A DNA stretch of 64,000 bases from positions 1 through 64,000 of IMG/VR virus record IMGVR_UViG_3300045256_000050; one strand, given 5' to 3'. How positions within the stretch are numbered: the stretch's first letter is position 1; the number at the start of each line of letters is the position of its first letter. This document shows positions 2,818-63,924 of this stretch, in pieces. Under the pieces are notes generated by a model, which was given only the letters and a program-made list of their open reading frames with translations, ran no database searches and had not been told where the DNA came from. A program made the position numbers and the translations under genes.

Positions 2818-2890
2818 GTCGCATTCGTCTAGCGGTCTAGGACACTGCCCTTTCAAGGCAGTAACACGGGTTCGAGTCCCGTATGCGACA
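2818..2890 (+). tRNA. tRNA-Glu(TTC), no encoded CCA
   Basis: Full cloverleaf: acceptor GTCGCAT/ATGCGAC, D-arm GTCTAGCGGTCTAGGAC, anticodon arm CTGCC-CTTTCAA-GGCAG, T-arm ACGGG-TTCGAGT-CCCGT. Confidence 0.93.
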
Positions 2891-2912
2891 CTAATAACAA
2901 CCGGAGCGAACC

Positions 2913-7371: not shown

Positions 7372-7650
7372 ATGGCGAAGGCGATCAAGGCGAGCGACAA
7401 GCCCCTGGTGCTGACGGCGGTGCGGGGCTACCGCAAGGAGTTGTTCCACAAGGCCCGCAGCGGGGTGTACACCTTCCGGGTGTACGGCAGCGGCAAGGAG
7501 TGGTTCATCGCCATCGACACGGGGTCGAAGGTGGTGCGGCTGACGAGCGGCAAGGTGTTCGGCAAGAAGTCCACGGCCATCGGGTTCGTGTTCGCCCGGT
7601 ACGGCCAGAAGGCCACCGAGTTCCGGGCGGCGGCGAAGCTGGCGGCGTGA
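7372..7650 (+). CDS. Basic hypothetical protein
   Basis: GGAG RBS, start moved to ATG 7372; followed by a GC hairpin at about 7657-7705. Confidence 0.75.
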   Translation: MAKAIKASDKPLVLTAVRGYRKELFHKARSGVYTFRVYGSGKEWFIAIDTGSKVVRLTSGKVFGKKSTAIGFVFARYGQKATEFRAAAKLAA

Positions 7651-7761
7651 TACAAGCCCGGCCCGCTACCCGGAGAAACATCGAGAGTCACGGTAGCGGG
7701 CCGGGTGAGTGACACCGGCTGAAGGGGTGTGAGTGAGACACACCCCTTCACTGAGGCCAGC

Positions 7762-8160
7762 ATGTTCCGCAAGTTCCAGACGCTAGTGCCGGACGGCAAG
7801 TATCTCAAGCACGTTTACGACGTGCCGAAGGAGGCCGGGTTCTACGTCCTGAAGTACAAGGAAGGGCACGAAGAACGGGTCTACCTGGACACGCCGAAGC
7901 ATCACCACAGCGAAGTCTACAGCTACCCGGCGACGTACTTCAACTACCGAGACAAGCCGGACTGCGGGATGGACATGGGCCAGTATGTGTGGGTGAACAG
8001 CTACACCACGCACGGCCCGGTCGAGTGGCGTCGGATGGAACCGAAGGAGGCGTTAGAGTTCTCCTGTGCCCTGTTCCGGTTCGGTCGTCCGTCGTGGGCA
8101 CATCCGCACGGCCGCAAACCGCTGACTCTGGCAGACGTGACACCGGCTGAAGTGGCGTAA
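7762..8160 (+). CDS. Hypothetical protein
   Basis: CACTGAGG RBS; ends in the repeat (VTPAEVA*). Confidence 0.8.
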   Translation: MFRKFQTLVPDGKYLKHVYDVPKEAGFYVLKYKEGHEERVYLDTPKHHHSEVYSYPATYFNYRDKPDCGMDMGQYVWVNSYTTHGPVEWRRMEPKEALEFSCALFRFGRPSWAHPHGRKPLTLADVTPAEVA

Positions 8161-8189
8161 CGAACACCAACCCAAGAGAGGGGACGACG

Positions 8190-8591
8190 ATGAGCCGGAG
8201 CTACAACGCTTTCAACCACAAGGCTTGGGCTGAGGCGGGGCTGAAGGACTACGGGGACTTCGCCGACATGGTGGAGTTCGTGAACCAGACGGAGTACGGC
8301 GACGGGCAGTTGGAAGGCGAGTGGTACTACTGCGACGACGAAACCCGGACGATCTACACCGGGACGTTCGGCAACTACAACTCGCCGGGGGCGGACAGCT
8401 ACACCAACGCCGACGTGTACGACGAGGACGAGATCGACGAGTACAACGCCGAAAAGGCGAAGCTCGAAGCTCAGGACGAGTACAGCGACGAGCAGCACGA
8501 AATCTGGGACGCCGAAGACGAAGAGGGTGAGGACGGCGACGAGGACGGTGACACCGGCAGTGAGTGGGCAGAGAGGCCGATGGGACCGTAA
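8190..8591 (+). CDS. Highly acidic protein (possible DNA mimic)
   Basis: Very D/E-rich with aromatic residues. Confidence 0.8.
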   Translation: MSRSYNAFNHKAWAEAGLKDYGDFADMVEFVNQTEYGDGQLEGEWYYCDDETRTIYTGTFGNYNSPGADSYTNADVYDEDEIDEYNAEKAKLEAQDEYSDEQHEIWDAEDEEGEDGDEDGDTGSEWAERPMGP

Positions 8592-9791: not shown

Positions 9792-10103
9792 ATGCGTCGG
9801 ATGCTGCTGGTTGGTGCGGTGCTGGGGCTGGCGAGCATGGGCCGGGCGGATGACAAGATCGTGGTGAAGGACAACAAGGGCACGACGATCATCATCAACG
9901 GGCCGGTGATCGTGAGCGGCAACAACAACATCGTGCAAATCGGCTCGGGCAACAAGGTGATCGTGAACAGCCCCGGAGCGGTGCAGAAGGGCACGAAGAA
10001 TGCCCCGTCCCGTGCTGGCTCCGTGTCAAAGCCGTGTGACGAGCAGGCCCAACGGCACGAGCAGCAGGTCGCCGCCTGGATGGCGATGATGGGCAAGCGG
10101 TGA
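9792..10103 (+). CDS. Secreted protein with short G-N-N-x-V/I beta repeats
   Basis: Signal-peptide-like N-terminus (MRRMLLVGAVLGLASMGRA); stop is the repeat TGA. Confidence 0.8.
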   Translation: MRRMLLVGAVLGLASMGRADDKIVVKDNKGTTIIINGPVIVSGNNNIVQIGSGNKVIVNSPGAVQKGTKNAPSRAGSVSKPCDEQAQRHEQQVAAWMAMMGKR

Positions 10104-10146
10104 CACCCCCTGACGAGGCGTCCTAGAACCCCCGGAGATCGAGAGC

Positions 10147-10416
10147 GTGGCAGGCAAGACGAAGACCAACAAGGTTCATTACATCCCGTCGTCGGAAGTG
10201 TTCGACGGCCGTCCGTTCGCCAAGCAGGCGTTGGAGGACAGCGGGCTGTACACCTACGGCGAGAATGACATCTCGCTGGTGAGCCGTGACAAGCTTATCG
10301 AAGGACTCGAAGGGCTGGACATCGAGGACGACGACGTGCAAGAAGAGGTAGACGGGGCTGTCGAGTACCTGCAAGGACTGCCCGCAACGATCTACATCGA
10401 CCTTGAGGACATGTGA
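10147..10416 (+). CDS. Acidic hypothetical protein
   Basis: GTG start; stop is the repeat TGA. Confidence 0.75.
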   Translation: MAGKTKTNKVHYIPSSEVFDGRPFAKQALEDSGLYTYGENDISLVSRDKLIEGLEGLDIEDDDVQEEVDGAVEYLQGLPATIYIDLEDM

Positions 10417-29343: not shown

Positions 29344-29766
29344 ATGCGGGATTTCAATGAGTTCCTTATCGAGAACGACCAGCGGGTGTTCAACGAGATT
29401 TTCGGCAAGATCGCCGGTGCCCTGGGGATGGGCGGGCCGGAGTGGGTCGGCTACCTGAAGAAGCTGTCGGCCACCCCGGAGGGTCCGGTCGCCCAGCAGA
29501 TGCTCAAGATGTTCACTAAAGGCGTGGACCCGAAGGATTACATGTGGGTCAAGCAGAATCAGAACGACGTGTTCCGCTTCCTCCAGAAGCACCGGAACAA
29601 CCTGGAAGGGATGGGTGTGAACGTAGACGGGTTGATTAAGAAGCTGGGAATCTACGACCCGACCGACTTGGCGATCAAGCAGTCCGGCAATGCTGGCTGG
29701 CTCGGCAACCGGAACGTTTCGGCTCACGACAACCACGCCACGGCGAACGTCAAGAGCCTTCGCTAA
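29344..29766 (+). CDS. Hypothetical protein with a capsid-targeting-like N-terminus
   Basis: GGAG RBS; MRDFNEFLIE start. Confidence 0.75.
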   Translation: MRDFNEFLIENDQRVFNEIFGKIAGALGMGGPEWVGYLKKLSATPEGPVAQQMLKMFTKGVDPKDYMWVKQNQNDVFRFLQKHRNNLEGMGVNVDGLIKKLGIYDPTDLAIKQSGNAGWLGNRNVSAHDNHATANVKSLR

Positions 29767-36057: not shown

Positions 36058-37032
36058 ATGGAGCGGTTTGCGAACAATCTCAGAACTACCGTCAATCAGA
36101 TCGGCGGCATCAACAATAGCTCGAACCCGGTGACTTTCACCGTGGCCGATGCTACCGGGTTCCCGTCGTCCGGCAACTTCCGAATCATCATCGACAGCGA
36201 GATCATGCTGGTGACTTCCGTCTCCGGCAACAACTTCACCGCCACCCGTGCCCAGGAGGGGACGGTGATCGCCAAGCACGACCACACCGCCCCGGTCTAC
36301 CACCTGTTCACTGCGGGGGCGTTGACGGCGGCTTGCTCGGATACCGTCCAGAGCGGGCAGTACGCCCAACTCCCGGCCAGCCCCGAGCGGGGGCGACTGT
36401 ACGTCCCGAACAACGACCAGGACTGGCAGGTGGGTCAGGCGTCGGGGTGGATGCCGGTCGGGCCGATGATTAAGATGACGTACCCGGACAACAGCCTGTA
36501 CTCCTGGGTGAACCAGGGCAGTACGACGATCACGCAGAACGGGCACCACATCATCATGACCGGGGATAACCACACGTTCGGCACCCGGTACGCCCGGATG
36601 AAGACGGCCCTGACGCCGCCGTTCCGGTACACGCTGATCTTCACCGCCAACGTCGAGAACATCTTCACCCGGAACTCGGCCTGTGGGATTATCCAGCGGG
36701 AGTCCAGTACCGGGAAGTGTATTACCATCGAGCAGTCCTACGGGGTGAACTTCCTGCGGTTCGGCGTGTTGTATTTCAACACCGTCACGAGCTTTAACAG
36801 CATGCTCTACGGGTGGACGGATTACCCGCACCCGAAGTTCATGCGGTTCCTCCAGGTTCACGACGACGGGACGAACGTGAACTACAACCTGTCCTACGAC
36901 GGCATCTTCTACGAAACCATCTACAGCCGGGGGCGGACGACCCTGATTACGGCCGACCAGATCGGCTTTGAACTCGGGGAAACGGTGGACGGCCTGAACA
37001 AGATGATCGTCTGGAGTATCGAAGAGGGCTAA
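36058..37032 (+). CDS. Tail fibre/receptor-binding-like protein, paralog 1
   Basis: N-terminal 'FPSSGNFRIIIDSEIMLVTSVSGNNFTATRAQEGT' virion-attachment-like module. Confidence 0.75.
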   Translation: MERFANNLRTTVNQIGGINNSSNPVTFTVADATGFPSSGNFRIIIDSEIMLVTSVSGNNFTATRAQEGTVIAKHDHTAPVYHLFTAGALTAACSDTVQSGQYAQLPASPERGRLYVPNNDQDWQVGQASGWMPVGPMIKMTYPDNSLYSWVNQGSTTITQNGHHIIMTGDNHTFGTRYARMKTALTPPFRYTLIFTANVENIFTRNSACGIIQRESSTGKCITIEQSYGVNFLRFGVLYFNTVTSFNSMLYGWTDYPHPKFMRFLQVHDDGTNVNYNLSYDGIFYETIYSRGRTTLITADQIGFELGETVDGLNKMIVWSIEEG

Positions 37033-37997
37033 TGGAAAGATTCACTAATAATGCGTTCACGACCCTGGCCGGTGCCATCGACGAGAGTACGACCCCCGTC
37101 ACCTTCGCCGTCGCCAGTGCGTCCGCATTTCCCACGGCAGGCAACTTCCGCATTGTGGTTGATAGTGAAATCCTCCTGGTGACTTCCGTCTCGGGGAACA
37201 ACTTCACTGCGACGAGGGGTGCGGAAGGCAGCCCGATCCAGGCCCATGCGGTCGGGGCCGGGGTGCGGCACGTCTTCACTGCGGGGGTGTTGACACAAGT
37301 CCTCGCCGACAACATCACCACCGGGCCGTATGCGAGTCTGCCGTCCTCTGCGGGGCGAGCGGGCCGGATGTACGTTCCGACCGACGAATATGTGGTTATG
37401 GTGAGCGACGGGTCGAACTGGCTTCGGTACGGCCCCATCTATCCGGTGACACGGCCGAACTTCTCCGGGGCGACTCAGGTTAACTTCTCGGGCACGACGT
37501 ACAGCCAGACGGCGTTCGGTGCCCAGATTGTCCAGGTGGGCGGGGCTGGAGGTACGAGGCGTGGGGTGTTCAAGAGTACGATCACCGCCCCGTACAAGAT
37601 CACCATGATTTACAGTCAGACGGGTTCGCTGCCGGGGGATACCCGGACGGCGGGTTTGGCTATCCGGGATTCGGCGACCGGGAAGTTGGTCACGTTCGAG
37701 ATAGCGATGGCGTTCGGGGCTTGCGGCGTTCACCAGTGGAACTCGCCCACGTCGTTCAACAACTCACCGCTGGGCTGGGGTTCGATTGAGTACACGGCGG
37801 GGTGGATCAAGTTCCTCCAGATTCACGACGACGGGACGAACCACAGGTTCAACTTCTCGGCGGACGGTATTTATTGGGACACGCTTTACACCCAGAGCAA
37901 GACGGCGTGGCTGGCAACCCCCGACCAGTACGGGTTCATTGTGGGCGAGGGGTCGGCGACGACGAACGTCCTGAGCTTTAAGGAGGAGAGTGCGTAA
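37032..37997 (+). CDS. Tail fibre/receptor-binding-like protein, paralog 2
   Basis: Same N-terminal module and HDDG(T/A)N C-terminal motif. Confidence 0.75.
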   Translation: MERFTNNAFTTLAGAIDESTTPVTFAVASASAFPTAGNFRIVVDSEILLVTSVSGNNFTATRGAEGSPIQAHAVGAGVRHVFTAGVLTQVLADNITTGPYASLPSSAGRAGRMYVPTDEYVVMVSDGSNWLRYGPIYPVTRPNFSGATQVNFSGTTYSQTAFGAQIVQVGGAGGTRRGVFKSTITAPYKITMIYSQTGSLPGDTRTAGLAIRDSATGKLVTFEIAMAFGACGVHQWNSPTSFNNSPLGWGSIEYTAGWIKFLQIHDDGTNHRFNFSADGIYWDTLYTQSKTAWLATPDQYGFIVGEGSATTNVLSFKEESA

Positions 37998-38971
37998 TGG
38001 CCGTTGAAGTGTTTGGTAACAACGCAGTCTCGTACCTGACGGCTGCCCTGGATAGCTCGACCGACCCGGCACCGATCTCCGTTCACAACGGTTCGGTGTT
38101 CCCGAGGAGTGGGAACTTTCGCATCCAGATCGACAGTGAAATCCTCCTGGTGACATCCGTCTCCGGGAACACGTTCACCGCCAGCCGTGCCCAGGAGGGG
38201 ACGCAGATCGTCGCTCACGAGAACGGATCGACCGTCAAGCACATCTTCACGGCCGGAGGATTGAATAAGGCGTTGGACGAGTCCGTTGTCGTCAGCAGCT
38301 ACTCTGCCTTGCCGTCTGCCGGGAGGGCGGGACGGGTTGCCTTCACTAGCGACGACCGGGTGATGTTGTTCAGTGACGGGTCGAACTGGTTGCCTTATGG
38401 CCCGTTCACCCGGTTCTACCCGCCGGTGCTGTCGGACTTAACCTGGGTCAACCAGGGGGCGTCGAGAACGGCTACCCAGCTTGGCACGGTGTTCAACATA
38501 AACAGCACGTTGCCGAACGGCAGTTCGAACCGAGGGGGTTTGGTGAAGACGGCCCTCACGCCCCCGTTCAAGCTGACGATCTGCTACACCATTAACAAGC
38601 GGGTGATGGCCGAGAGCTTCTTTTCGGGCGGGATCATGGAGTACGAGTCGTCGTCCGGGAAGTTCATCACCTGGGAGCAGGGCACGTTCAACTTCATCAA
38701 CATCGGGGTTCACACCTGGAACAACGGCACTTCGTTCGCCGGGACGATCTACGGGTGGGCACCCTACGACGAGCCGACGTACCTGCGGTTCATGCAGATT
38801 CACGACGACGGGGCGAACGTGAACTACAACTTCAGCTACGACGGGATCGGCTGGTACACGCAGTACAGCCGTGCCCGGACGAGCTTCATCAACGCCGACA
38901 AGTACGGGGTGATGCTGTCCGAGGGGCAGGGGAGCGTCACCGTCTTCAGTTTCAAGGAAGAGTCGGCCTAA
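37997..38971 (+). CDS. Tail fibre/receptor-binding-like protein, paralog 3
   Basis: Same architecture; shares the SFKEESA end with paralog 2. Confidence 0.75.
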   Translation: MAVEVFGNNAVSYLTAALDSSTDPAPISVHNGSVFPRSGNFRIQIDSEILLVTSVSGNTFTASRAQEGTQIVAHENGSTVKHIFTAGGLNKALDESVVVSSYSALPSAGRAGRVAFTSDDRVMLFSDGSNWLPYGPFTRFYPPVLSDLTWVNQGASRTATQLGTVFNINSTLPNGSSNRGGLVKTALTPPFKLTICYTINKRVMAESFFSGGIMEYESSSGKFITWEQGTFNFINIGVHTWNNGTSFAGTIYGWAPYDEPTYLRFMQIHDDGANVNYNFSYDGIGWYTQYSRARTSFINADKYGVMLSEGQGSVTVFSFKEESA

Positions 38972-48651: not shown

Positions 48652-49305
48652 ATGTTAAGCTTCCGTGCATGGTTTGAAGTCAACTACCCGAAAGAACTCG
48701 ACGATTTCGACCCGACTGATTTCGCCGGTCGGGAAGCCTCCATTCAGCAGAGGATGAAGGAGAAGGGCGAGGACTGGTTCACCGCCGGTTCCGCCCCGAC
48801 GGACTACAAGGTCCGCCGAGCCGAAGTCATCAAAGCCTGGAACCACATCGTCAAGACCCTATTCCCCGGCGGTGAGTTCACCGGCAACCTGGACACGGGT
48901 CCGGGCAACGTGATGAACTACAGCATCAAGATGGGGCCACGGGGCGTCATCTTCTCTCTTCACGAAGACAAGTACGGCAAGAACCTGTACGCCACGGTGG
49001 ACTTCGGCTGGGACGAGATGCCCGCAGAGTTGAGCCAGAAGGACGCTGACAACGTGAGCGGCGGGGACGCCAACGTAGCCGCTAAGAGCGTTCAGCCGGG
49101 GTCCATGACTTTCATGCGTACCCTGGAGCGGTACGCTGCGGCCTGCCAGAAGTACGGCATCCGGTTCATCTTCAACGCCTCGGACGAGGGCGACACGTCA
49201 CGCCGGGTGCCGGTGTACGGGAAGGTGTTGAAGCGGGCGGGCTACGAGCCGGTGAATGTTTACCGCCGCCGTAACACATTCAAGCCAGCCGGAAGCACCT
49301 ACTGA
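48652..49305 (+). CDS. Hypothetical protein with a capsid-targeting-like N-terminus
   Basis: MLSFRAWFE start; CTACATA immediately upstream. Confidence 0.8.
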   Translation: MLSFRAWFEVNYPKELDDFDPTDFAGREASIQQRMKEKGEDWFTAGSAPTDYKVRRAEVIKAWNHIVKTLFPGGEFTGNLDTGPGNVMNYSIKMGPRGVIFSLHEDKYGKNLYATVDFGWDEMPAELSQKDADNVSGGDANVAAKSVQPGSMTFMRTLERYAAACQKYGIRFIFNASDEGDTSRRVPVYGKVLKRAGYEPVNVYRRRNTFKPAGSTY

Positions 49306-55420: not shown

Positions 55421-57046
55421 TTACACTACTCCTGGGATTTTTTCAAGAACGAAGTCTGGGTCTTTGTGCGGTGCGTAGTAGACGTTTACAAACTCACGCA
55501 AGTGTTCACTAATAGACTTGACCCAGATACGGCTCTGTAGGTGCTTCGTGGCGACCACGCTGGCCCACGAGTCGATGCCGATGTAGCCGCCGCACTCCTC
55601 GGCCAGCCGCCGGGCCTCACAGATGCCCACGTCCGTCTTGTTCCTTAACAGGCGGTGGTCGGGTATCTCGACGCTATCCGGCCCGATCACCACGCCCGTC
55701 ATCTTCCATCTCTCCAGCCAAGCAATCGTGTTCTCCCAATCCTGCTTGTCGAAGTTTCGGCCACGGGAGTAAGTGTTGCCGCTGGCCGGGCAGATCAACA
55801 CATACCCGCTGCCCCGCAGTTGTGTCAGGAACTCGTCCTTCTTGACGAAGCTCAACTCCTTACCGTTCTCCAAGATGTTCTGGAACTGAACCTGGATGCT
55901 GTAGTCCTCAACCTCGTGCCAGTCTTTCGGGCACAAGTCCACGCCGGTCTGCTCGAAGTGGTGGGCGAACGCCTCGGTGATCTGCCCCTTCCGGTCGAAG
56001 GCGTCGAGGTTGTGGAAGTCGCTCCAGATGGTTTCGATTTCCACGTTCGGGTGACGCTCGCCGATGAGTTGAGTCAGTTCCTTGTGGGCACGGGTGGCGA
56101 GGTAGATTTTCTTCAGTGAAGACTCGAACTTGCTCAGCATGTGCGACTTGAGAGCCAACCAGTCGCCGATGCCGCCTGTTACCACGATCTTCTCCGTGGG
56201 CGGGACGTGGTAGATGGTCGTCTTGTTGTCGATAACGGCACGGGTGCGGGTGAGGAGTTCCTGCCAGTCGTCGCAGCGGGATTGTCGTAACAGCGTGAGC
56301 GACGGATACCAGTTGCCGACCTTCCAGCGGGGGTCGTGGTAGCGGGACATCAACCCCAGCGTAGGGACGCCCATCGCCCCTGCGATGTGCAGGGCGGCGG
56401 TATCCACCGTGACCACCAAGTCCATCTGCTTAATCAACGCCGCCGTGTCGAGGAAGTTGTTCTGTTCCACGCCGTTGAGCGGGAAGTCTTCGGCGTCCCG
56501 CAGAAACCAGTTCAGGTTCGGCTGCTGTTGGATCATGAAGAATTCGGCGTTCGGCCTCAGTAAAGTCTTGAACCACTTGAGCGGGCAGGACCGTTCGAAG
56601 TTGTTGGTGTGGCTCGGGTTGCCCTCCCAGGCGATGCCGATTTTCAGCTTGTTCTCGAACCCCGCCAGCGGCCGATCCGGGGCCGTCAGGTAGTTGGCGG
56701 TGGGGATGAAGCCGAGGATGAAGGGCAGGCTCAGGGAGAGGATGTGGTAGTCGTGCGGCGGCAGGCTCTCGTCGCCTTCCTTGTCGATCCACCCGGCGAT
56801 TTTGAAGTTGTACTCGACGAGCGGACGAAGGGCGGCGTGGGCGTGGATATATAGCTCACACTCCTGCTTGAGCAGGTAAGGGATGTACCGCAGAAATTGA
56901 ATGACATCGCCACAGCCCTGTTCCCCGTAGAGGATCACTCTCTTACCTTTGAGCGGCCGGTCGCCGTTCCACCTGATGCTGTTGCAGTACAGGTAGTGGT
57001 AGTTGACCATCTTCGGGGAATTGAGCCGTAGCAGGTTGTCTTTCAT
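55421..57046 (-). CDS. Glycosyltransferase with GT9-like domain(s)
   Basis: EQGCGDVIQF, IGIAWEG, DLVVTVDTAALHIAGAMG; second domain GGIGD...YIGIDS. Confidence 0.85.
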   Translation of the reverse strand: MKDNLLRLNSPKMVNYHYLYCNSIRWNGDRPLKGKRVILYGEQGCGDVIQFLRYIPYLLKQECELYIHAHAALRPLVEYNFKIAGWIDKEGDESLPPHDYHILSLSLPFILGFIPTANYLTAPDRPLAGFENKLKIGIAWEGNPSHTNNFERSCPLKWFKTLLRPNAEFFMIQQQPNLNWFLRDAEDFPLNGVEQNNFLDTAALIKQMDLVVTVDTAALHIAGAMGVPTLGLMSRYHDPRWKVGNWYPSLTLLRQSRCDDWQELLTRTRAVIDNKTTIYHVPPTEKIVVTGGIGDWLALKSHMLSKFESSLKKIYLATRAHKELTQLIGERHPNVEIETIWSDFHNLDAFDRKGQITEAFAHHFEQTGVDLCPKDWHEVEDYSIQVQFQNILENGKELSFVKKDEFLTQLRGSGYVLICPASGNTYSRGRNFDKQDWENTIAWLERWKMTGVVIGPDSVEIPDHRLLRNKTDVGICEARRLAEECGGYIGIDSWASVVATKHLQSRIWVKSISEHLREFVNVYYAPHKDPDFVLEKIPGVV

Positions 57047-58146: not shown

Positions 58147-59070
58147 TCAAGCGTTTGCCACGAGTTCCACGGACGTGATCCGGTTGATGCCGGTTGCGGA
58201 CTCGAACCGTACTCGCATGAAGTTAATCTCCAGCCGGTCGAACGCCGTGACCGGAGTCCATGTCCACTCCACCACCGAGTACGAACCTGTCGTGGCCGAC
58301 GAGAACGATTGGCTGCGTGGCGTGAAGCCCGGAGCTTCCACGACGAGGCTGGCCCCGATGAGGGCCGGGGCCGACGTGTTCTTCACGCAGATACGGAGCG
58401 TGACCGAACTGTAAGATTGCGGCGTGCCGTCCGGGAGAACGTCGAAGGCGAACTCCTGGGTGGTGTTCGTGTCGTCGTAGATGTAGCTGCCGTCGCCGTC
58501 GTTGGCGTCCACGGGCGTGCGAATCTTCTCCCACTTGTGGCCCATCGCCGGGACACGCTTCCAGCCGGTGCCGGGGGCGGTGATGATGTTCGCCCCCAGG
58601 TCGTCGTTGGGCCGCAGGGTGAACGGCGGGCCGAGGAGGAAGTCCCGGACATCCGTGATGTTCTGGATGGCCCGCAGGGCGGTGCGGGAGTGACGGCCCG
58701 GATTGAGGGTCATCCGCTCGGCGATGTCGTAGAGTTCGTCCACAGCGTTGACGTTGAGCCATGTGGCACTCGTGTTCATGGCGAGGTACGGGACGCTGTT
58801 ACGATAAATCTGTAGGTTGTAGACGTTATCGTTGTTCATGACCGTCTGGCTGAGCCGGTATTCCCAGAGGACTTGTGGGCGGTACGGGTCGGTGCAGATG
58901 GTCAGGTCACGCTCGTAGGCGTAGTATTCCCCTGGCGCAACGAGCGACCAGTTGACGCCGAAGAGTTCGGTCTTCATGATGAGTTCCCGGACCAGCATCT
59001 CGTTGTACAGGAAGTCGAGTTCCTTCTTGTTGTTCTGGTCGATGGGAAGACTAGGAATTCTTTGGCTCAT
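58147..59070 (-). CDS. Hypothetical, probable virion protein
   Basis: Long ORF with a beta-rich C-terminal domain. Confidence 0.75.
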   Translation of the reverse strand: MSQRIPSLPIDQNNKKELDFLYNEMLVRELIMKTELFGVNWSLVAPGEYYAYERDLTICTDPYRPQVLWEYRLSQTVMNNDNVYNLQIYRNSVPYLAMNTSATWLNVNAVDELYDIAERMTLNPGRHSRTALRAIQNITDVRDFLLGPPFTLRPNDDLGANIITAPGTGWKRVPAMGHKWEKIRTPVDANDGDGSYIYDDTNTTQEFAFDVLPDGTPQSYSSVTLRICVKNTSAPALIGASLVVEAPGFTPRSQSFSSATTGSYSVVEWTWTPVTAFDRLEINFMRVRFESATGINRITSVELVANA

Positions 59071-59365
59071 ATATCATTTCTCTCAGGAAGATTCGGTAAC
59101 ACTTGCTGTACGCCTGCCCCCAGGCGGCACCGTGGGTGTAGTTCCCCGGCTTGTCCCAGGCCAGGACGTGTGCCATCTCGTGAATTAGCGTCTCTAGGGC
59201 AAGTTCTTCGGAAAGGTCTTTACTGATGCGGATGCGAAATGTGCCGTCTTCGAGCTTCAGGCAGTCGCCGTGGCAGTCTTGGGGAACACGCACCCGTCTG
59301 ACCGAGAATGTATACTCGGGCAAACACCGCCGGTACATGTTTACGACCTTCCTAAATTGCCCCAT
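59051..59365 (-). CDS. SprT-like HExxH metalloprotein
   Basis: LIHEMAHV...HGAAW. Confidence 0.8.
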   Translation of the reverse strand: MGQFRKVVNMYRRCLPEYTFSVRRVRVPQDCHGDCLKLEDGTFRIRISKDLSEELALETLIHEMAHVLAWDKPGNYTHGAAWGQAYSKCYRIFLREMIYEPKNS

Positions 59366-59403: not shown

Positions 59404-60054
59404 TTACAGCTTAACGTGGTAGACCTTGACTAATAACGGGTCCAGTTCGGCTTGGAGTTCACCGAACGAGACGACGTGTTCGTCCCGGTCTTCCCAGATG
59501 TGAATCTCTTCCAGGTCCGTCCAGAGGGCAACGAACTGGTCGATAATCCACTTCTTCCACGGGAAGGTTTCCTGTGGCTTCGGACCTTTTGCCAGCTTAA
59601 TAGCCGGACCGTCGTTCCCGAGGAGGAACAACTGTACCTTCGGATCGACCCACCGGAAAGTACCGTTACCGACCTTCTCGACCTGGGCGAGCTTCCCGTC
59701 GTGGATGACCCGGTAGACTTGCTGGGCAAGCCCAGCGTGTCGGCCGGTCATGATGACGGTCGCCCGTTCGGGGTCGGCGGCGGACTTCCTCAATGCCTCC
59801 ACGGTTTCCGTGATGAACCACTCCGGCGTCAGCGGGTCCGGGCAGAGCGGCGGTTGCATCGTCTCCGCACGCCCGTACCAGCCCTGCCGCATCGGAATGA
59901 ACTTCCCGTGCTTTGCCGACAGTTCCTTCGACAAGCTCTTGGAGATTGCCCAGGGGATGCCGGTAGCCTTCTCGTATTGCTTACGAGTTTCGGGGGTATC
60001 GACGGGGTTCTTCCACAGAGTCCCGTCGAGATCGAAGATGTCTAAGTATTTCAT
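59404..60054 (-). CDS. HAD-superfamily phosphatase (Swiss-Army-Knife RNA-repair-like HAD)
   Basis: FDLDGTL, MTGR, WKK and WEDR motifs. Confidence 0.8.
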   Translation of the reverse strand: MKYLDIFDLDGTLWKNPVDTPETRKQYEKATGIPWAISKSLSKELSAKHGKFIPMRQGWYGRAETMQPPLCPDPLTPEWFITETVEALRKSAADPERATVIMTGRHAGLAQQVYRVIHDGKLAQVEKVGNGTFRWVDPKVQLFLLGNDGPAIKLAKGPKPQETFPWKKWIIDQFVALWTDLEEIHIWEDRDEHVVSFGELQAELDPLLVKVYHVKL

Positions 60055-60105
60055 GACGGCACCCGTGGTCATCGAGGTTTTAGCTCAATATACCACGGGC
60101 GTCGG

Positions 60106-61626
60106 TTATTGTAAAGACTTCCGCAGGAGCGACCGGAACATTTGCAGTTCCATCTCCCGCTTCTTCTGAGTTGCGTCTTCAGTGCGGAGTTGACCGGAGA
60201 ACGGGTCTTTGAGGGACGCAAAGGCGTCGGTCACTTCACCGTTACCGTTGATCGGCTCGACTCTTGGGGAGTTGAGGTAGGCCACGAATGCGTCGGCCAA
60301 GCTGTCGGGTTTGCCGCCGACCTTCGTCAACCACGCCCGAATCTTTCGGGTCGGAACGCCCGAAGTCATGATGGCGTCCGTCATTTCGGCGAGCGAGTTA
60401 GCGTCCACTTCCGGGGACAGGCCCAGGGTCTTCACCAAAACAACGATCTTCTTCACGTCTTCCGGGCGGACGCCTTCGAGTTGTCGGACGATCACGCCTT
60501 CCGGCAACTTCTGCATCATCCACGCAATCGGGGCGTGGCGGTCGCCGATCTCCCGCAGGCCGCTCGGCATCTCCATGTTCAGGTCGCCGCCCACTTCTGG
60601 TGGGAACAGGTGATCCGTAACACCGAGAACGCTCAGGAGCTTCAGGAACTTCCGGGGGTCGATGTCCTCGTAGCCCATGCCCTTCATGAACTCGTCCATA
60701 GCGGCCTTTCGGTCCACCTTAGCGAGCAGCGGGGCAGCCTTGCGGATCATCTCGGTTTCTTCGTCGCTGATGGACGCCGGATCGCCGTAGCGGGCCATCA
60801 TCCGGGCGAACCGGAGGATACGCATCGGGTCTTCACTGAACTTGGCGTCGAACCCGCCGATGGGCGAGATACGACCGGCCTTCAGGTGGTGGAGTCCGCC
60901 GAAGAAGTCGCTCAGTTCCTTGTTCGGGCCGTTGTCGTTGCCGAGCAACAGGTACATCGAGTTGATGGTGAAGTCACGGCCAGCCGCATCGTCTGCGTGC
61001 GTGCCGTTCATGATGTCGCCCTCTTTGCTCCGGGTGAACACGCTCAGGTCGAACTCGTCGTTGCGAACCTTAACACCGAAGCTGTACGGACGACCGCCGG
61101 AGTCCTTCTTCTTCACCCAGAACACCTGCTGAGCGGCCGGTTGTTCGCCGCCGAGTCCGCCCGCCTGCATGGACGAGTTCGGGCCGTTGTCCGGCTGGCC
61201 GTTCTCGCCGATGAACTTGAACTTGTTCTGGGTGAGGATGTGGTACACTTCGTCGGGGCTGGCGTCCGTCACCAGTTCGATGTGACGGGGCTTGCGGCCC
61301 GTCAGGTGGTCACGGAGCGCACCGCCGGTCAGGTACAGTTTCTTGCTGCCCACCTTGACCGGCTTGTCCTCGCCCGTCTTCGGGTCTTTGCTCCAGCCCC
61401 AATTCGCACTCTTCTTGAAAGCTCGCACGAGCGGTGCGAGATTCTTGTTCTTCCCGAAGTGTTCGGAGTTCGTGTCGTCGGAAACGGTAAAAGGCGGCAG
61501 GTCGTTGCCGTCGCCCAGGGAGATTCGTGAAGTCAACGGCTCCTCGCCAGCACCACCGGCACTGCCGAGGCCGTTTCTCGCCTTCTGTTCTTCGACGAAT
61601 TCCCGGAATGTTCTCTTCTTTAGCAT
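60106..61626 (-). CDS. CCA-adding enzyme/poly(A) polymerase family protein with a substituted catalytic DxD
   Basis: GGALRDHL, RDFTINSM, EDPMRILR; the DxD position reads H-I-E. Confidence 0.85.
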   Translation of the reverse strand: MLKKRTFREFVEEQKARNGLGSAGGAGEEPLTSRISLGDGNDLPPFTVSDDTNSEHFGKNKNLAPLVRAFKKSANWGWSKDPKTGEDKPVKVGSKKLYLTGGALRDHLTGRKPRHIELVTDASPDEVYHILTQNKFKFIGENGQPDNGPNSSMQAGGLGGEQPAAQQVFWVKKKDSGGRPYSFGVKVRNDEFDLSVFTRSKEGDIMNGTHADDAAGRDFTINSMYLLLGNDNGPNKELSDFFGGLHHLKAGRISPIGGFDAKFSEDPMRILRFARMMARYGDPASISDEETEMIRKAAPLLAKVDRKAAMDEFMKGMGYEDIDPRKFLKLLSVLGVTDHLFPPEVGGDLNMEMPSGLREIGDRHAPIAWMMQKLPEGVIVRQLEGVRPEDVKKIVVLVKTLGLSPEVDANSLAEMTDAIMTSGVPTRKIRAWLTKVGGKPDSLADAFVAYLNSPRVEPINGNGEVTDAFASLKDPFSGQLRTEDATQKKREMELQMFRSLLRKSLQ

Positions 61627-61676: not shown

Positions 61677-62078
61677 TTAGGGAACCGAAGGCGGGTTCAG
61701 ACCGAGTTTGTATAGTACGAAAGCGGCGATGACGATCCAGCAGAGTTGGATTACGAAGCCCCAGATCGACGCCCACCGGCCTTCGTTGCCTTTGGAAGTG
61801 TGTTCGAGGGCCATGAGCCGCTTATCAATCTCGTTCAACTTGTCTGCGTGCGCAGCGACTTCGGTGAACACGGCGTTCGTGTTCCTCGACTCCAGCACCA
61901 CGATCCGCTGGACTGTTTCGTTGTAGAGCTTGTTAAGGGTTTCCAAGCGGGTGTCCTGCTCGACCTGCTTAGTCTGGATAGACTTGACCCGCTCGTCGAT
62001 CCGAGTGCTGAGTTCAAACAGCTTTTGGATGTTCTCCGACGCTTGGGTCAATATCTGCATTTGTAGGTCTTCACGCAT
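61677..62078 (-). CDS. Coiled-coil protein with a C-terminal TM segment
   Basis: Heptad pattern and hydrophobic tail. Confidence 0.8.
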   Translation of the reverse strand: MREDLQMQILTQASENIQKLFELSTRIDERVKSIQTKQVEQDTRLETLNKLYNETVQRIVVLESRNTNAVFTEVAAHADKLNEIDKRLMALEHTSKGNEGRWASIWGFVIQLCWIVIAAFVLYKLGLNPPSVP

Positions 62079-62131
62079 GGTATTCCCCTAATATGTGGCT
62101 TCGCAGCTATATACCATTAACAGGAGCAAAG

Positions 62132-62641
62132 ATGGCAGAAACCAAGCAAGAAGTTAAGGTTGAGGAAGTGGATGAGGACGTGTTCGCCATCCCGACGGCC
62201 GAAGTTATGGAAGACATGGGCGAGATCATGCCGACCATGAACGTCAACCCGTCCCTCCCCGCCCCGCAGCAAGAAGAGAAGTGCATCGTAGAAGACGAGA
62301 AGATTCTGGGCCTCTACGACGAGATTCTGGTCAACTGTCGAGACGACCGAAAGCAATGTGACGAAATCCTCGTTCAGTTAATCAACATGGTGCTGAACGA
62401 CGGTGACGCCTCCAGTGCGACGAAGGAGGCGATGGTCAACGTCCTCAAGGCGAAGACCGACGTGAGTGACAAGATGGCGAAGGTCGCCGATCTGATGACT
62501 CGTATTAAGCTCAAGGACAAGGACACGTTCCCACGCTACCTCGCCGCTCACCAGCACAACAACGTGACGATTGAGAGTAACAACACGAAGCGTGACATCC
62601 TCAAGGCACTTCAGACCGCAAAGAAAAAGGGTGGCAAATGA
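62132..62641 (+). CDS. Hypothetical protein (possibly terminase-small-subunit-like)
   Basis: AGGAG RBS; helical core then 'NNVTI...RDILK' tail; family not confirmed. Confidence 0.75.
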   Translation: MAETKQEVKVEEVDEDVFAIPTAEVMEDMGEIMPTMNVNPSLPAPQQEEKCIVEDEKILGLYDEILVNCRDDRKQCDEILVQLINMVLNDGDASSATKEAMVNVLKAKTDVSDKMAKVADLMTRIKLKDKDTFPRYLAAHQHNNVTIESNNTKRDILKALQTAKKKGGK

Positions 62642-63924
62642 CAAACAGAATCAATGAGATGTACTGGCTCGCCGAAATGGACATTCCGGCCGCAGGTGGT
62701 CAGCCCGACCCCGGTGCCGGTGGTCCGCCCACGTCGATGCCGGGCGGGCCGGGCGACCCGATGGCTCAGAACCCAGGCCAGTTGCCGCCGCAAGGTGGCG
62801 GCTCGCCCGTCCCACAGCAAGAGCCGATGGAAGAACCGGACGCCCCGGACATGCCGGACATGGGCGAAGACGTGAACTTCGAGACATGGAAGAAGGAGTA
62901 CATGAAGGCGTCCGTCAAGGGCGACCCGAACGTGCTGCTCGACATGATTGGTCAGGTGCGTGACAAGGAACTCGACCCGAACCCCCGTAAGTTCGTGGAA
63001 GACAACCTCCAGGTCTGTTTCCTCCGTCAGCACCAAGACTTCCTCATCCCGTCGAAGAAGCTCCGCACGATGGTCAAGGATCAACTCGACCGGACGGCCC
63101 CTGGTACTTCACTGATTCAATACTTGACACAGGTACTCGACGAGTCCCCGCTGGTCGCACAAATCCTCCTGAAGCTCCCGAACACGGGCGGCGGCAAGGG
63201 TGACTACCACCGGAAGTTCCTGGCGGCGATGCTCGGGGCCGTTCAGGTCGGTAGCGGTGCTGGCAACGAAGACTTGGTTTACAACGAGAAGGATTACAGC
63301 ATCCTGGTCAGCACCCGGTTCAACACCCGCTGGGGTGACGTGAACCTGGGCCGCTGGTCGATGAAGGAAGACGACGCTCAGCGGTACTTGAAGCCCGCCG
63401 AACTGCAACGCCTCGAAGGCGGCAGCCCGGAGGAGCGTGACGTTCTGCGTCGGCGTGTCGTGATGGAATCCATCTCCGAGACGTTCAAGCTGCGGGCGTA
63501 TTTGATTAACGCCGTGTCGGACGACGGCACCATCGGCCACCTGGGACTCGACCTGGGGAACTGCCTGCGTGCCGCCTACACCGACGGCAAGCTCGTGGTG
63601 CGGACGAAGGACAGTGACGCCCGGAGTGCGTTCATTGACGAAGAGGGTCAGGTCGTGCCGATCCCGGACATGAACATCTACTACGTCAAGCAGGCCGAAG
63701 ACATGGACGAGAAGGGCCAGCAGGACACGGAAGAGATCGAGTTCATCGCCTACCGGGACGGGAACCTGTACCTGACCGCCCAGCCGGACGTGTTGAAGGA
63801 AGCCGCCAGCACCTTGCAGGGGTTGGTGTACAAAGAGACGCCGTTCCAGGGCAACCCGACCGATCTGGTTCGGATCAGCCGGTGCGTGCCGTCGGCAGCA
63901 GAAGTCCTCATGAAGCAGTGCTAA
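62638..63924 (+). CDS. Hypothetical protein with a Pro/Gly/acidic N-terminus, probable head protein
   Basis: 428-aa ORF, ATGA overlap. Confidence 0.8.
   Translation: MTNRINEMYWLAEMDIPAAGGQPDPGAGGPPTSMPGGPGDPMAQNPGQLPPQGGGSPVPQQEPMEEPDAPDMPDMGEDVNFETWKKEYMKASVKGDPNVLLDMIGQVRDKELDPNPRKFVEDNLQVCFLRQHQDFLIPSKKLRTMVKDQLDRTAPGTSLIQYLTQVLDESPLVAQILLKLPNTGGGKGDYHRKFLAAMLGAVQVGSGAGNEDLVYNEKDYSILVSTRFNTRWGDVNLGRWSMKEDDAQRYLKPAELQRLEGGSPEERDVLRRRVVMESISETFKLRAYLINAVSDDGTIGHLGLDLGNCLRAAYTDGKLVVRTKDSDARSAFIDEEGQVVPIPDMNIYYVKQAEDMDEKGQQDTEEIEFIAYRDGNLYLTAQPDVLKEAASTLQGLVYKETPFQGNPTDLVRISRCVPSAAEVLMKQC

Follow-up and report, generated by a model that had tools for sequence, protein, structure and literature searches.

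CCA-adding enzyme homologues of huge phages carry N/H-x-E in place of DxD and a leader resembling the T4 capsid-targeting sequence

The window analysed here is a stretch of 64,000 nucleotides at the start of an IMG/VR viral contig of 244,986 bp (IMGVR_UViG_3300045256_000050; GC 58%), and we describe one of its genes, at 60106-61626 on the minus strand. The 506-residue product (P0001, hereafter the CCA-like protein) belongs to the PolyA_pol / class II nucleotidyltransferase (NTase) superfamily by homology and by fold. CCA-adding enzymes are two-metal polymerases in which the DxD motif is treated as indispensable. In the CCA-like protein the two aspartates are replaced by His and Glu, DxD is found in none of 120 aligned family members, the EDxxR nucleotide template is kept, and the first residues resemble the capsid-targeting sequence (CTS) of phage T4. 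Judged by its sequence, the protein departs from a functional CCA-adding enzyme at the defining catalytic motifs (DxD, RRD and the motif C Asp) and in its NCBIfam scores, and it is not filed as one here. It is most likely unable to polymerise CCA at a normal rate. Our fuller reading is tentative and falls somewhat short of probable: rather than a normal CCA polymerase, the protein would be a nucleotide- and metal-dependent binder of tRNA 3' ends, loaded into the capsid, injected, and acting upstream of end-healing enzymes.

Fold and catalytic motifs

The features of the gene that carry the argument are as follows (window positions).

60106-61626 (-): CCA-like open reading frame (ORF), 506 residues, with the fold of class II nucleotidyltransferases and H-x-E in a remodelled motif A; from stop-free translation, Pfam, PHROG and an AlphaFold2 model
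61582-61626 (-): leader (residues 1-15, MLKKRTFREFVEEQK), T4 capsid-targeting-like; from comparison with T4 IPIII/IPII and from recurrence
61339-61527 (-): N-terminal extension of the head domain (residues 34-96), specific to the family and under the strongest constraint; from column conservation and substitution rates
61267-61326 (-): motif A (residues 101-120, GGALRDHLTGRKPRHIELVT); from a phmmer alignment to motif A of E. coli poly(A) polymerase (P0001 residues 96-131 aligned)
61042-61050 (-): third-carboxylate strand (residues 193-195), with D193 opposite the Glu of canonical x-E-I-A-T-F-R; from alignment with canonical phage paralogues
60961-60990 (-): motif B (residues 213-222, DAAGRDFTIN), in which RRD has become G-R-D; from alignment
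60883-60909 (-): motif C (residues 240-248, DFFGGLHHL), in which the conserved Asp has become His247; from alignment
60802-60834 (-): motif D (residues 265-275, EDPMRILRFAR), with the EDxxR nucleotide template intact; from alignment

The ATG at 61626 is preceded by a strong ribosome-binding site (AAGGAAGGTGGAG), and homologues start at the same place. A longer frame starting at GTG was rejected, as it overlaps the upstream gene and has no homologue support. The product matches Pfam PolyA_pol (PF01743) with 55.8 bits against a cut-off of 23, in two pieces separated by an insertion, and PHROG 2244 'tRNA nucleotidyltransferase' with an E-value of 3.4e-30. A sequence search of the PDB retrieved E. 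coli poly(A) polymerase (PAP) and CCA-adding enzymes. The AlphaFold2 model, calculated with 120 homologues, has a pLDDT of 90.4 and a pTM of 0.83, and Foldseek matched it to solved class II enzymes with an E-value of 1e-13. Superposition on the human mitochondrial CCA-adding enzyme 4x4w gave a VIA Z of 25.3 (residues 34-495, 356 aligned, root-mean-square deviation 5.0), on E. coli PAP a Z of 22.5, and on the tRNA-bound CCA/A-adding structures 5hc9, 8cbm and 4wc2 a Z of about 20-22. The head-neck-body-tail architecture of class II enzymes is retained in the model. No NCBIfam equivalog model comes near its cut-off: the pcnB subfamily model, which scores best, gives 81 bits where 306 are required, and the CCA equivalog gives 62 where 290 are required.

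The canonical motif A is GGxVRDxxxGxxxxDxD. In the phmmer alignment, the first Asp of DxD corresponds to His115 (CAC, 61282-61284) and the second to Glu117 (GAA, 61276-61278). An earlier note on this DNA, made by reading the sequence, had claimed that H and E replace the motif A aspartates, that the first Arg of RRD is lost in DAAGRDFT and that EDxxR remains (EDPMR); the alignment with E. coli PAP bears out the first point, and the other two were found as described. Positions that are retained include G101, G102, R105 and D106 in motif A, R217, D218, the F and T that follow and N222 in motif B, D240, G243 and G244 in motif C, and R272 and R275 after EDxxR. In the E. coli CCA enzyme, DxD is catalytically essential, the AxA mutant being inactive, and EDxxR serves as the nucleotide template (PMC11784652). 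The motif C Asp (human D139) is strictly conserved and caps a helix (PMC8563995), and the human D139A mutant shows a 15-fold loss of A-addition (PMC8563995, PMC11784652). The class I enzyme AfCCA uses E59 and D61 (PMC3794860).

Column 193 was assigned as the third catalytic position from the alignment and general knowledge of the Pol-beta superfamily, not from coordinates. It is acidic (D/E) in 84/120 family members. Residue 195, two positions further on the same face of the strand, is acidic in 35 of the 36 members that are non-acidic at 193, so that 119/120 have D or E at one position or the other. The exchange between 193 and 195 has a Fisher p of 3e-9, a value that ignores phylogeny, and the shift is seen in several separate clades of the tree.

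Conservation and selection across the family

A word-based protein search gave 162 matches, of which 120 were listed; these are 45-93% identical to the CCA-like protein, about 500 residues long and mostly from large contigs (up to 668 kb). The family alignment (n = 120) was made of the CCA-like protein and 119 of the listed matches, one fragment being left out. The states of motif A in this alignment were:

NxE: 100/120
HxE: 8/120
DxE: 6/120
DxQ: 2/120
NxQ: 2/120
HxD: 1/120
ExE: 1/120
DxD: 0/120

Position 115 is thus restricted to N, H, D and E, all of them capable of binding a metal, and Glu117 is 96% conserved. Asn itself binds Mg2+ in protein kinases. The codons for N, H and D differ at the first base only; of the 7 amino acids that lie one base from Asn, His and Asp alone were seen. 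The first position of RRD is G in 80/120 members and S in 33/120 (Gly/Ser 113/120). Position 247 is His in 114/120 (95%), preceded in the CCA-like protein by His246. EDxxR is conserved at 90% (E265), 93% (D266) and 98% (R269).

A FastTree phylogeny was rooted on the single DxD orthologue described below, and the numbers of independent changes read from it are approximate. NxE is ancestral on this tree and the window protein lies in a five-member HxE clade. Position 115 changed to His at least 4 times and to Asp at least 5 times, the Asp cases being confined to tips or to a pair. Efficient two-metal polymerisation is hard to square with a motif that begins with Asn and has resisted a return to Asp over so deep a tree.

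Selection was estimated as the ratio of nonsynonymous to synonymous substitution rates (dN/dS) by comparing the CCA-like protein with L037, a relative of 87% identity found in another assembly, at a dS of about 1.3:

Whole protein: 0.067
N-terminal extension (residues 34-96): 0.020
Head domain: 0.037
Neck to tail: 0.095

The N-terminal extension contains the invariant residues L37, G38, D50, D51, G58, N60, F70, N75, W76, G77, W78, G85 and K88. Its helix 61-72 aligns to the first helix of solved CCA enzymes, and a search of the ESM Atlas with residues 28-98 returned unnamed clusters only. The restricted choice at position 115, the conservation of Glu117, the 193/195 exchange and the constraint on the head indicate that the pocket is still under selection.

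The earlier note had named a sequencing error among the findings that would overturn it. Each of the D to H and D to E changes needs a single base, and nothing else was found in support of a sequencing or assembly error or of a decaying pseudogene. Relatives with 85-93% identity, taken from other assemblies (P0003-P0006), have the same H-x-E motif. It also occurs in an IMG/VR contig of another record (L005), which is 100% identical over 9.9 kb and, since it may come from the same phage population, gives weak independent support. With an intact frame, N/H-x-E in more than 100 homologues and a dN/dS of 0.067, we rejected error and decay, whose probability we regard as negligible.

Taken together, the sequence patterns make the catalytic core look remodelled, not abandoned. 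The description 'lacking the catalytic DxD' in the earlier note is therefore right as to the loss of DxD and overstated where it is read as a lost catalytic site, given the N/H/D/E restriction at 115, Glu117, the carboxylate shift and the constrained head.

The same observations bear on a different explanation, that the protein remains functional as a tRNA nucleotidyltransferase, adding CCA, CC or A or serving in repair, with a non-canonical metal site formed by N/H-x-E and the carboxylate at 193/195. In such an enzyme the acidic loop S49-D50-D51, which is conserved and particular to the family, might help, and a neighbouring HAD phosphatase might be its partner as the HD domain is that of the CCA domain in multifunctional Cca. 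Residues capable of binding a metal do occupy all three triad positions, with a compensatory shift at the third. GG, RD, EDxxR and the basic R272 and R275 are conserved, the head is among the most strongly constrained regions, D-x-E variants occur naturally, the pairing of the CCA-like and HAD genes parallels the HD-CCA fusion, and the phage tRNA genes have no encoded CCA. We nevertheless consider this explanation somewhat unlikely. In 83% of members Asn stands in place of the first carboxylate and returns to Asp never spread, the E. coli CCA enzyme depends on its DxD for catalysis (PMC11784652), and RRD and the motif C Asp are altered as well. Moreover, NxQ and DxQ members are down two of the three carboxylates, a canonical HD-CCA stands beside a family member in one genome, and all NCBIfam CCA/PcnB equivalog scores are far below cut-off (best 81 against 306 bits).

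Canonical paralogue and DxD orthologue

One related genome (G001; 458,813 bp, 91% complete, 35% GC) encodes both an NxE member of the family and a 720-residue protein with a fused HD domain (HD-CCA), which keeps DxD, EIATFR, RRD and EDxxR. Three more HD-CCA homologues have equally canonical motifs. The HD-CCA loci recorded in related huge phages are 721-2883 on the minus strand of L019 (IMGVR_UViG_3300023179_000009, about 209.3-211.5 kb) and L034-L036. As the canonical HD-CCA is found in G001 and in three homologues, the related clade has an orthodox CCA repair enzyme. The HD-CCA paralogues also bear a CTS-like leader (MKSFNEWLVESS; MK[ST]F[NQ]xW). Co-occurrence of NxE and HD-CCA is documented in G001 only, the fragments G002-G008 carrying one or the other. 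No second, intact or canonical copy was found in the 245-kb contig, which is about 48% complete, so that its absence from the phage cannot be claimed.

In the genome LR756511 (locus L001), a syntenic orthologue with 29% identity still has DxD and RRD. The leader, the N-terminal extension and the His-His form of motif C are already present in it, as is the insertion that separates motif B from motif C. Since this orthologue shares the specialised features and yet has DxD, the change of the metal site came later, in an already specialised lineage. The presence of a canonical HD-CCA gene in G001 supports the CCA-like protein being a diverged paralogue, and not the standard CCA enzyme.

N-terminal leader and virion genes

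The T4 internal proteins IPIII and IPII both start with MKTYQEFIAE (NC_000866). The segment TYQEFIAE corresponds to TFREFVEE in the CCA-like protein, so that the capsid-targeting-like N-terminus pointed out in the earlier note is real. The consensus of the leader in the CCA-like family is [KR][ST]F-x-E-[YF], with F7 in 93% of members; examples are MKTFQEFKTLRE and MRSFLEFVEQKK, and the window protein has MLKKRTFREFVEE. In T4, 10 residues of CTS suffice for encapsidation, residues 4 and 7 acting in targeting and residues 8 and 10 in processing by gp21 (PMC9026906). The internal proteins of T4 are diverse and have the CTS as their sole common part (PMC3012670).

The leader, written as a regular expression, was found at the N-terminus of 10/321 ORFs in the window's genome against 0.56 expected, shuffled sequences never giving more than 4; 10 of the 23 total matches fall within the first ten residues. 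In G001 it was found in 25/632 ORFs against 2.3-4.1 expected. Its recurrence at both 35% and 58% GC indicates a signal at the level of the peptide, not an effect of codon composition. The leader-bearing ORFs of the window's genome are mutually unrelated, one pair excepted. Apart from the CCA-like gene they are, with contig positions equal to window positions for the first two:

29344-29766 (+) and 48652-49305 (+), in the window: CTS-like N-terminus
128573-129031 (-), 132434-133081 (-), 161061-161627 (+), 169556-170026 (+), on the contig: leader-bearing
203378-203863 (-), 213789-214514 (-), 240797-241429 (+), on the contig: leader-bearing

Their leaders include MRDFNEFLIEN, MLTFKKFMMAE and MTSFKEFFEAN. 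A Pfam search with these nine ORFs and 10 of those of G001 gave essentially nothing above the cut-offs, one DUF5662 match excepted. By their N-termini, these nine ORFs are candidates for capsid-targeted or injected proteins.

A prohead protease gene lies outside the window:

contig 123468-124133 (+): T4 gp21-type prohead protease (Peptidase_S77), E-value 7e-27

Peptidase_S77 is above the Pfam cut-off in 3/4 genomes examined (the window's contig, G001 and LR756511) and is sub-threshold in the fourth, LR745206 (20.1 bits against 27). The CCA-like gene stands next to the tail module, at one end of a virion gene cluster that encodes a tape measure, a baseplate wedge protein and a gp2-like protector of DNA ends.

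Leader-like N-termini were also observed in another locus of the family, L012. Two small ORFs between its CCA-like gene and its HAD gene, at 7470-7769 (+) and 7782-8264 (+), have near-perfect T4-like leaders (MKTFEQWFESKQ and MNFKKWIESVWY), and a P-loop protein just past the HAD gene, at 9887-10408 (-), starts with MNSFRTWLEDVEK.

A leader of this kind, next to virion genes, might also be expected of a mainly structural internal head protein that re-uses the fold for packaged DNA and has no role with tRNA, the more so as T4 internal proteins share the CTS alone (PMC3012670). Structural filling leaves unexplained the dN/dS of 0.02-0.04 in the extension and head, EDxxR and the metal-ligand pattern. 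In addition, the isoelectric point is near neutral (7.8; family median 6.9), not strongly basic, and we judge this explanation very unlikely.

It is also conceivable that the NTase pocket has been kept and its substrate or chemistry changed, for instance to bind or sequester a nucleotide signal or to modify another RNA or a protein, the protein being an injected take-over or counter-defence factor. The head is surrounded by family-specific invariant elements (loop 50-60, the NWGW hairpin 75-91, NDNGPNK 230-236 and H246/H247), the nucleotide template is retained while polymerase residues are altered, and a protein with such a leader would arrive as infection begins. Against this, the neck, body and tail, which in solved enzymes bind the acceptor arm of the tRNA, are kept at full length and superpose on the tRNA-bound structures named above, and nothing points to another ligand. 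We regard such a change as rather improbable.

Neighbouring genes

The genes around the CCA-like gene are:

59051-59365 (-): small SprT-like protein with HExxH, conserved next to the HAD gene (PF10263, 34.3 bits; synteny in L001, L005, L007 and L037)
59404-60072 (-): HAD_SAK_1 phosphatase (P0002, 222 residues) with an intact DxDGT motif I and no CTS-like leader (PF10307, 44.2 bits against 25.6)
61677-62078 (-): 133-residue coiled-coil protein with a C-terminal membrane helix, directly upstream and on the same strand in all loci examined, that of the DxD orthologue included
62093-62641 (+) and 62638-63924 (+): divergent gene pair of 182 and 428 residues, the latter with a Pro/Gly/Gln-rich N-terminus; no family match

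The Pfam match confirms the HAD phosphatase that the earlier note had placed beside the CCA-like gene. It has FDLDGT at residues 13-18 and EDRDEH near its C-terminus, and its orthologues start with IFDFDGTL; a sequence search of the PDB with it gave no significant match. The HAD_SAK_1 gene recurs downstream in 6/8 informative distinct loci. As the HAD orthologues of the NxE clade have no leader, the phosphatase would not be co-packaged, if packaging occurs.

The coiled-coil protein has a weak match to PHROG 937 'hemolysin' (E 3e-5). The 182- and 428-residue proteins are 45-63% identical in every related locus, mostly above the identity of the CCA-like gene itself. The gene order in L001 (the divergent 428- and 182-residue genes, the coiled-coil membrane protein, the CCA-like gene, the HAD gene and the SprT-like gene) is the same as in the window.

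Proposed role of the CCA-like protein

Under the reading that we favour, the two-metal centre would have been remodelled (N/H-x-E, [G/S]RD, motif C His), with the EDxxR pocket, one set of metal ligands and the tRNA-binding neck, body and tail kept. The protein would then bind or read tRNA 3' ends in a nucleotide- and metal-dependent manner and be at most a slow or altered transferase. The T4-type leader would load it into the prohead, where it may be trimmed by the gp21-type protease, and it would be injected with the DNA. Once injected, it would meet the host tRNAs ahead of phage gene expression, and might protect damaged 3' ends or sort them, to be healed by the HAD_SAK_1 phosphatase and a separate canonical HD-CCA. 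The earlier note had proposed a 'repurposed, possibly virion-delivered tRNA-binding or tRNA-protecting protein'. The family-wide loss of DxD, the paralogue status, the recurrent HAD neighbour and the evidence from leader, protease and gene location agree with that proposal; to speak of a lost catalytic site would overstate the case.

Several points weigh against this reading. The constrained metal-ligand pattern and the compensatory carboxylate could fit a still-active enzyme equally well, and D-x-E, present in 6 members, is a legitimate Pol-beta-type motif. The canonical paralogue stands beside a family member in only one near-complete genome, and none is on the window's contig, itself about 48% complete. 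The HAD gene is absent within 6 kb in 2 loci; a complex prediction for the CCA-like protein (residues 30-506) with the HAD phosphatase scored 0.00 ('no answer') and is evidence neither way. As to the leader, the regular expression was defined post hoc, and an independent position-specific scoring matrix, built solely from the CCA-like N-termini of other genomes, gave 5 hits against 1.15 expected, its top-ranked ORFs being the same as those of the regular expression. The leader of the CCA-like protein also lies 3 residues farther from Met1 than that of T4, and the family leaders do not uniformly contain a clean (L/I)-x-E site for cleavage.

A bolder version can be formulated, which we consider unlikely. 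A polymerase-dead CCA paralogue that keeps its nucleotide pocket, one of a set of enzymes loaded into the head by a T4-like capsid-targeting code, would be injected and would clamp host tRNA 3' ends against host effectors, or triage them for repair, before phage expression. If true, it would be a virion-delivered, tRNA-directed counter-defence pseudoenzyme, and the injected proteome of uncultivated huge phages would be predictable from N-terminal sequence alone.

The contig and its tRNA genes

The contig is about 48% complete according to the CheckV estimate. Its closest database relatives are 'uncultured phage' genomes of 595-635 kb, which indicates that the window is a fragment of a huge phage. 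A megablast search against the phage collection found zero relatives at the nucleotide level.

ARAGORN and Rfam detected one tRNA gene in the window, tRNA-Glu (TTC) at 2818-2891 (+). The second tRNA gene of the 245-kb contig, tRNA-Leu (TAG), is outside the window at 243395-243469 (-). These two are the only ones in the contig and encoded CCA is absent from both. The earlier note, which had spoken of two tRNA genes in the window without CCA, was correct about the missing CCA and not about their number in the window. The permuted tRNA mimics to which it had linked the CCA-like protein are unsupported by ARAGORN or Rfam; none turned up, no search aimed at mimics having been made.

Other features of the sequence were recorded. 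The motif TGACACCGRCTG has 35 copies against 0.03 expected, all on the plus strand between 303 and 16879 of the window and mostly upstream of small ORFs. A GCGTAAC-like box lies about 6 nt 3' of it, followed by a ribosome-binding site (AAGAGAGGGA). From its sequence and placement, the array looks like a phage-specific promoter set for an early-type gene cluster. Three tandem paralogous genes of about 320 residues each, with N-termini alike (MERFxNN...), occupy 36058-38971 (+) of the window, and more copies are found at 133464-134486 and 136361-137323 of the contig. A second multi-copy family, starting with MALxWxxGxxxYT, is located at 163-169 kb and 195 kb of the contig. Both families are probably fibre or receptor-binding paralogues. 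Finally, the 541-residue protein encoded at 55421-57046 (-) of the window contains a segment of glycosyltransferase family 9 (heptosyltransferase-like; 31 bits against a cut-off of 22).

Comparison with known systems

Reviews of huge and jumbo phages name the 'CCA-adding enzyme' and stand-alone SAK-type HADs among translation and RNA-repair genes (PMC7162821, PMC7824862). Neither a DxD-less CCA clade nor a CTS-like leader appears in these two reviews, and we found neither described in the literature searched. The HAD phosphatase of the window is, like the SAK HADs of jumbo-phage RNA repair (PF10307; PMC7824862), a stand-alone domain above cut-off. Such HADs are paired with RNA ligases and kinases in general terms (PMC7824862); that source mentions no recurrent pairing with a CCA-like gene that lacks DxD.

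With class II CCA enzymes and PcnB, the CCA-like protein has in common the four-domain fold, motif A GGxxRD, motif B RD, motif C GG, and EDxxR with the Arg residues that follow. It differs from them by N/H-x-E, by the lost first Arg of RRD, by the motif C His and by the drifting third carboxylate, and adds a conserved 60-residue elaboration before the head, the NDNGPNK insertion and the CTS-like leader. The phage HD-CCA, whose architecture resembles that of the multifunctional E. coli protein for CCA addition and repair, is of the same clade, NTase family and leader type. It has a fused HD phosphohydrolase, and canonical DxD, EIATFR and RRD, whereas the CCA-like protein has none of these three in canonical form, and its end-healing partner, if any, is the separate HAD gene.

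A precedent for a CCA-enzyme scaffold kept as an RNA-binding protein after loss of the canonical catalytic carboxylates is Utp22, which acts in eukaryotic ribosome biogenesis and has the class I fold in degenerate form. Its catalytic positions have degenerated and show no conservation, and its tRNA path is occluded (PMC3794860). The CCA-like protein is of class II, its replaced positions are tightly constrained and its template is intact, so that degeneracy of the Utp22 type was not what we found. What distinguishes the family is that it forms a strongly constrained, deep clade in huge phages, numbering 120 sequence clusters or more, in which DxD has been swapped for N/H-x-E and the nucleotide template kept. 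It would represent either a natural test of what NTase chemistry allows at a non-canonical site or the first pseudoenzyme among class II CCA enzymes, none having been found described in the literature searched.

Finally, the CCA-like protein shares with T4 IPI, IPII, IPIII and Alt a short leader with two aromatics three apart, then a hydrophobic residue and Glu; in both cases the leader is borne by unrelated proteins and a gp21-family protease is encoded. The T4 internal proteins are small and basic, whereas the CCA-like protein is a 500-residue homologue of a tRNA enzyme, encoded by uncultivated huge phages, in a family where the offset of the leader varies. If the leader, present in genomes of 35% and 58% GC and in related loci, is indeed capsid-targeting, it provides a sequence rule predicting the injected proteins of uncultivated huge phages. 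Such proteins would be prime candidates for early take-over and anti-defence roles, and the leader itself would be a candidate packaging tag.

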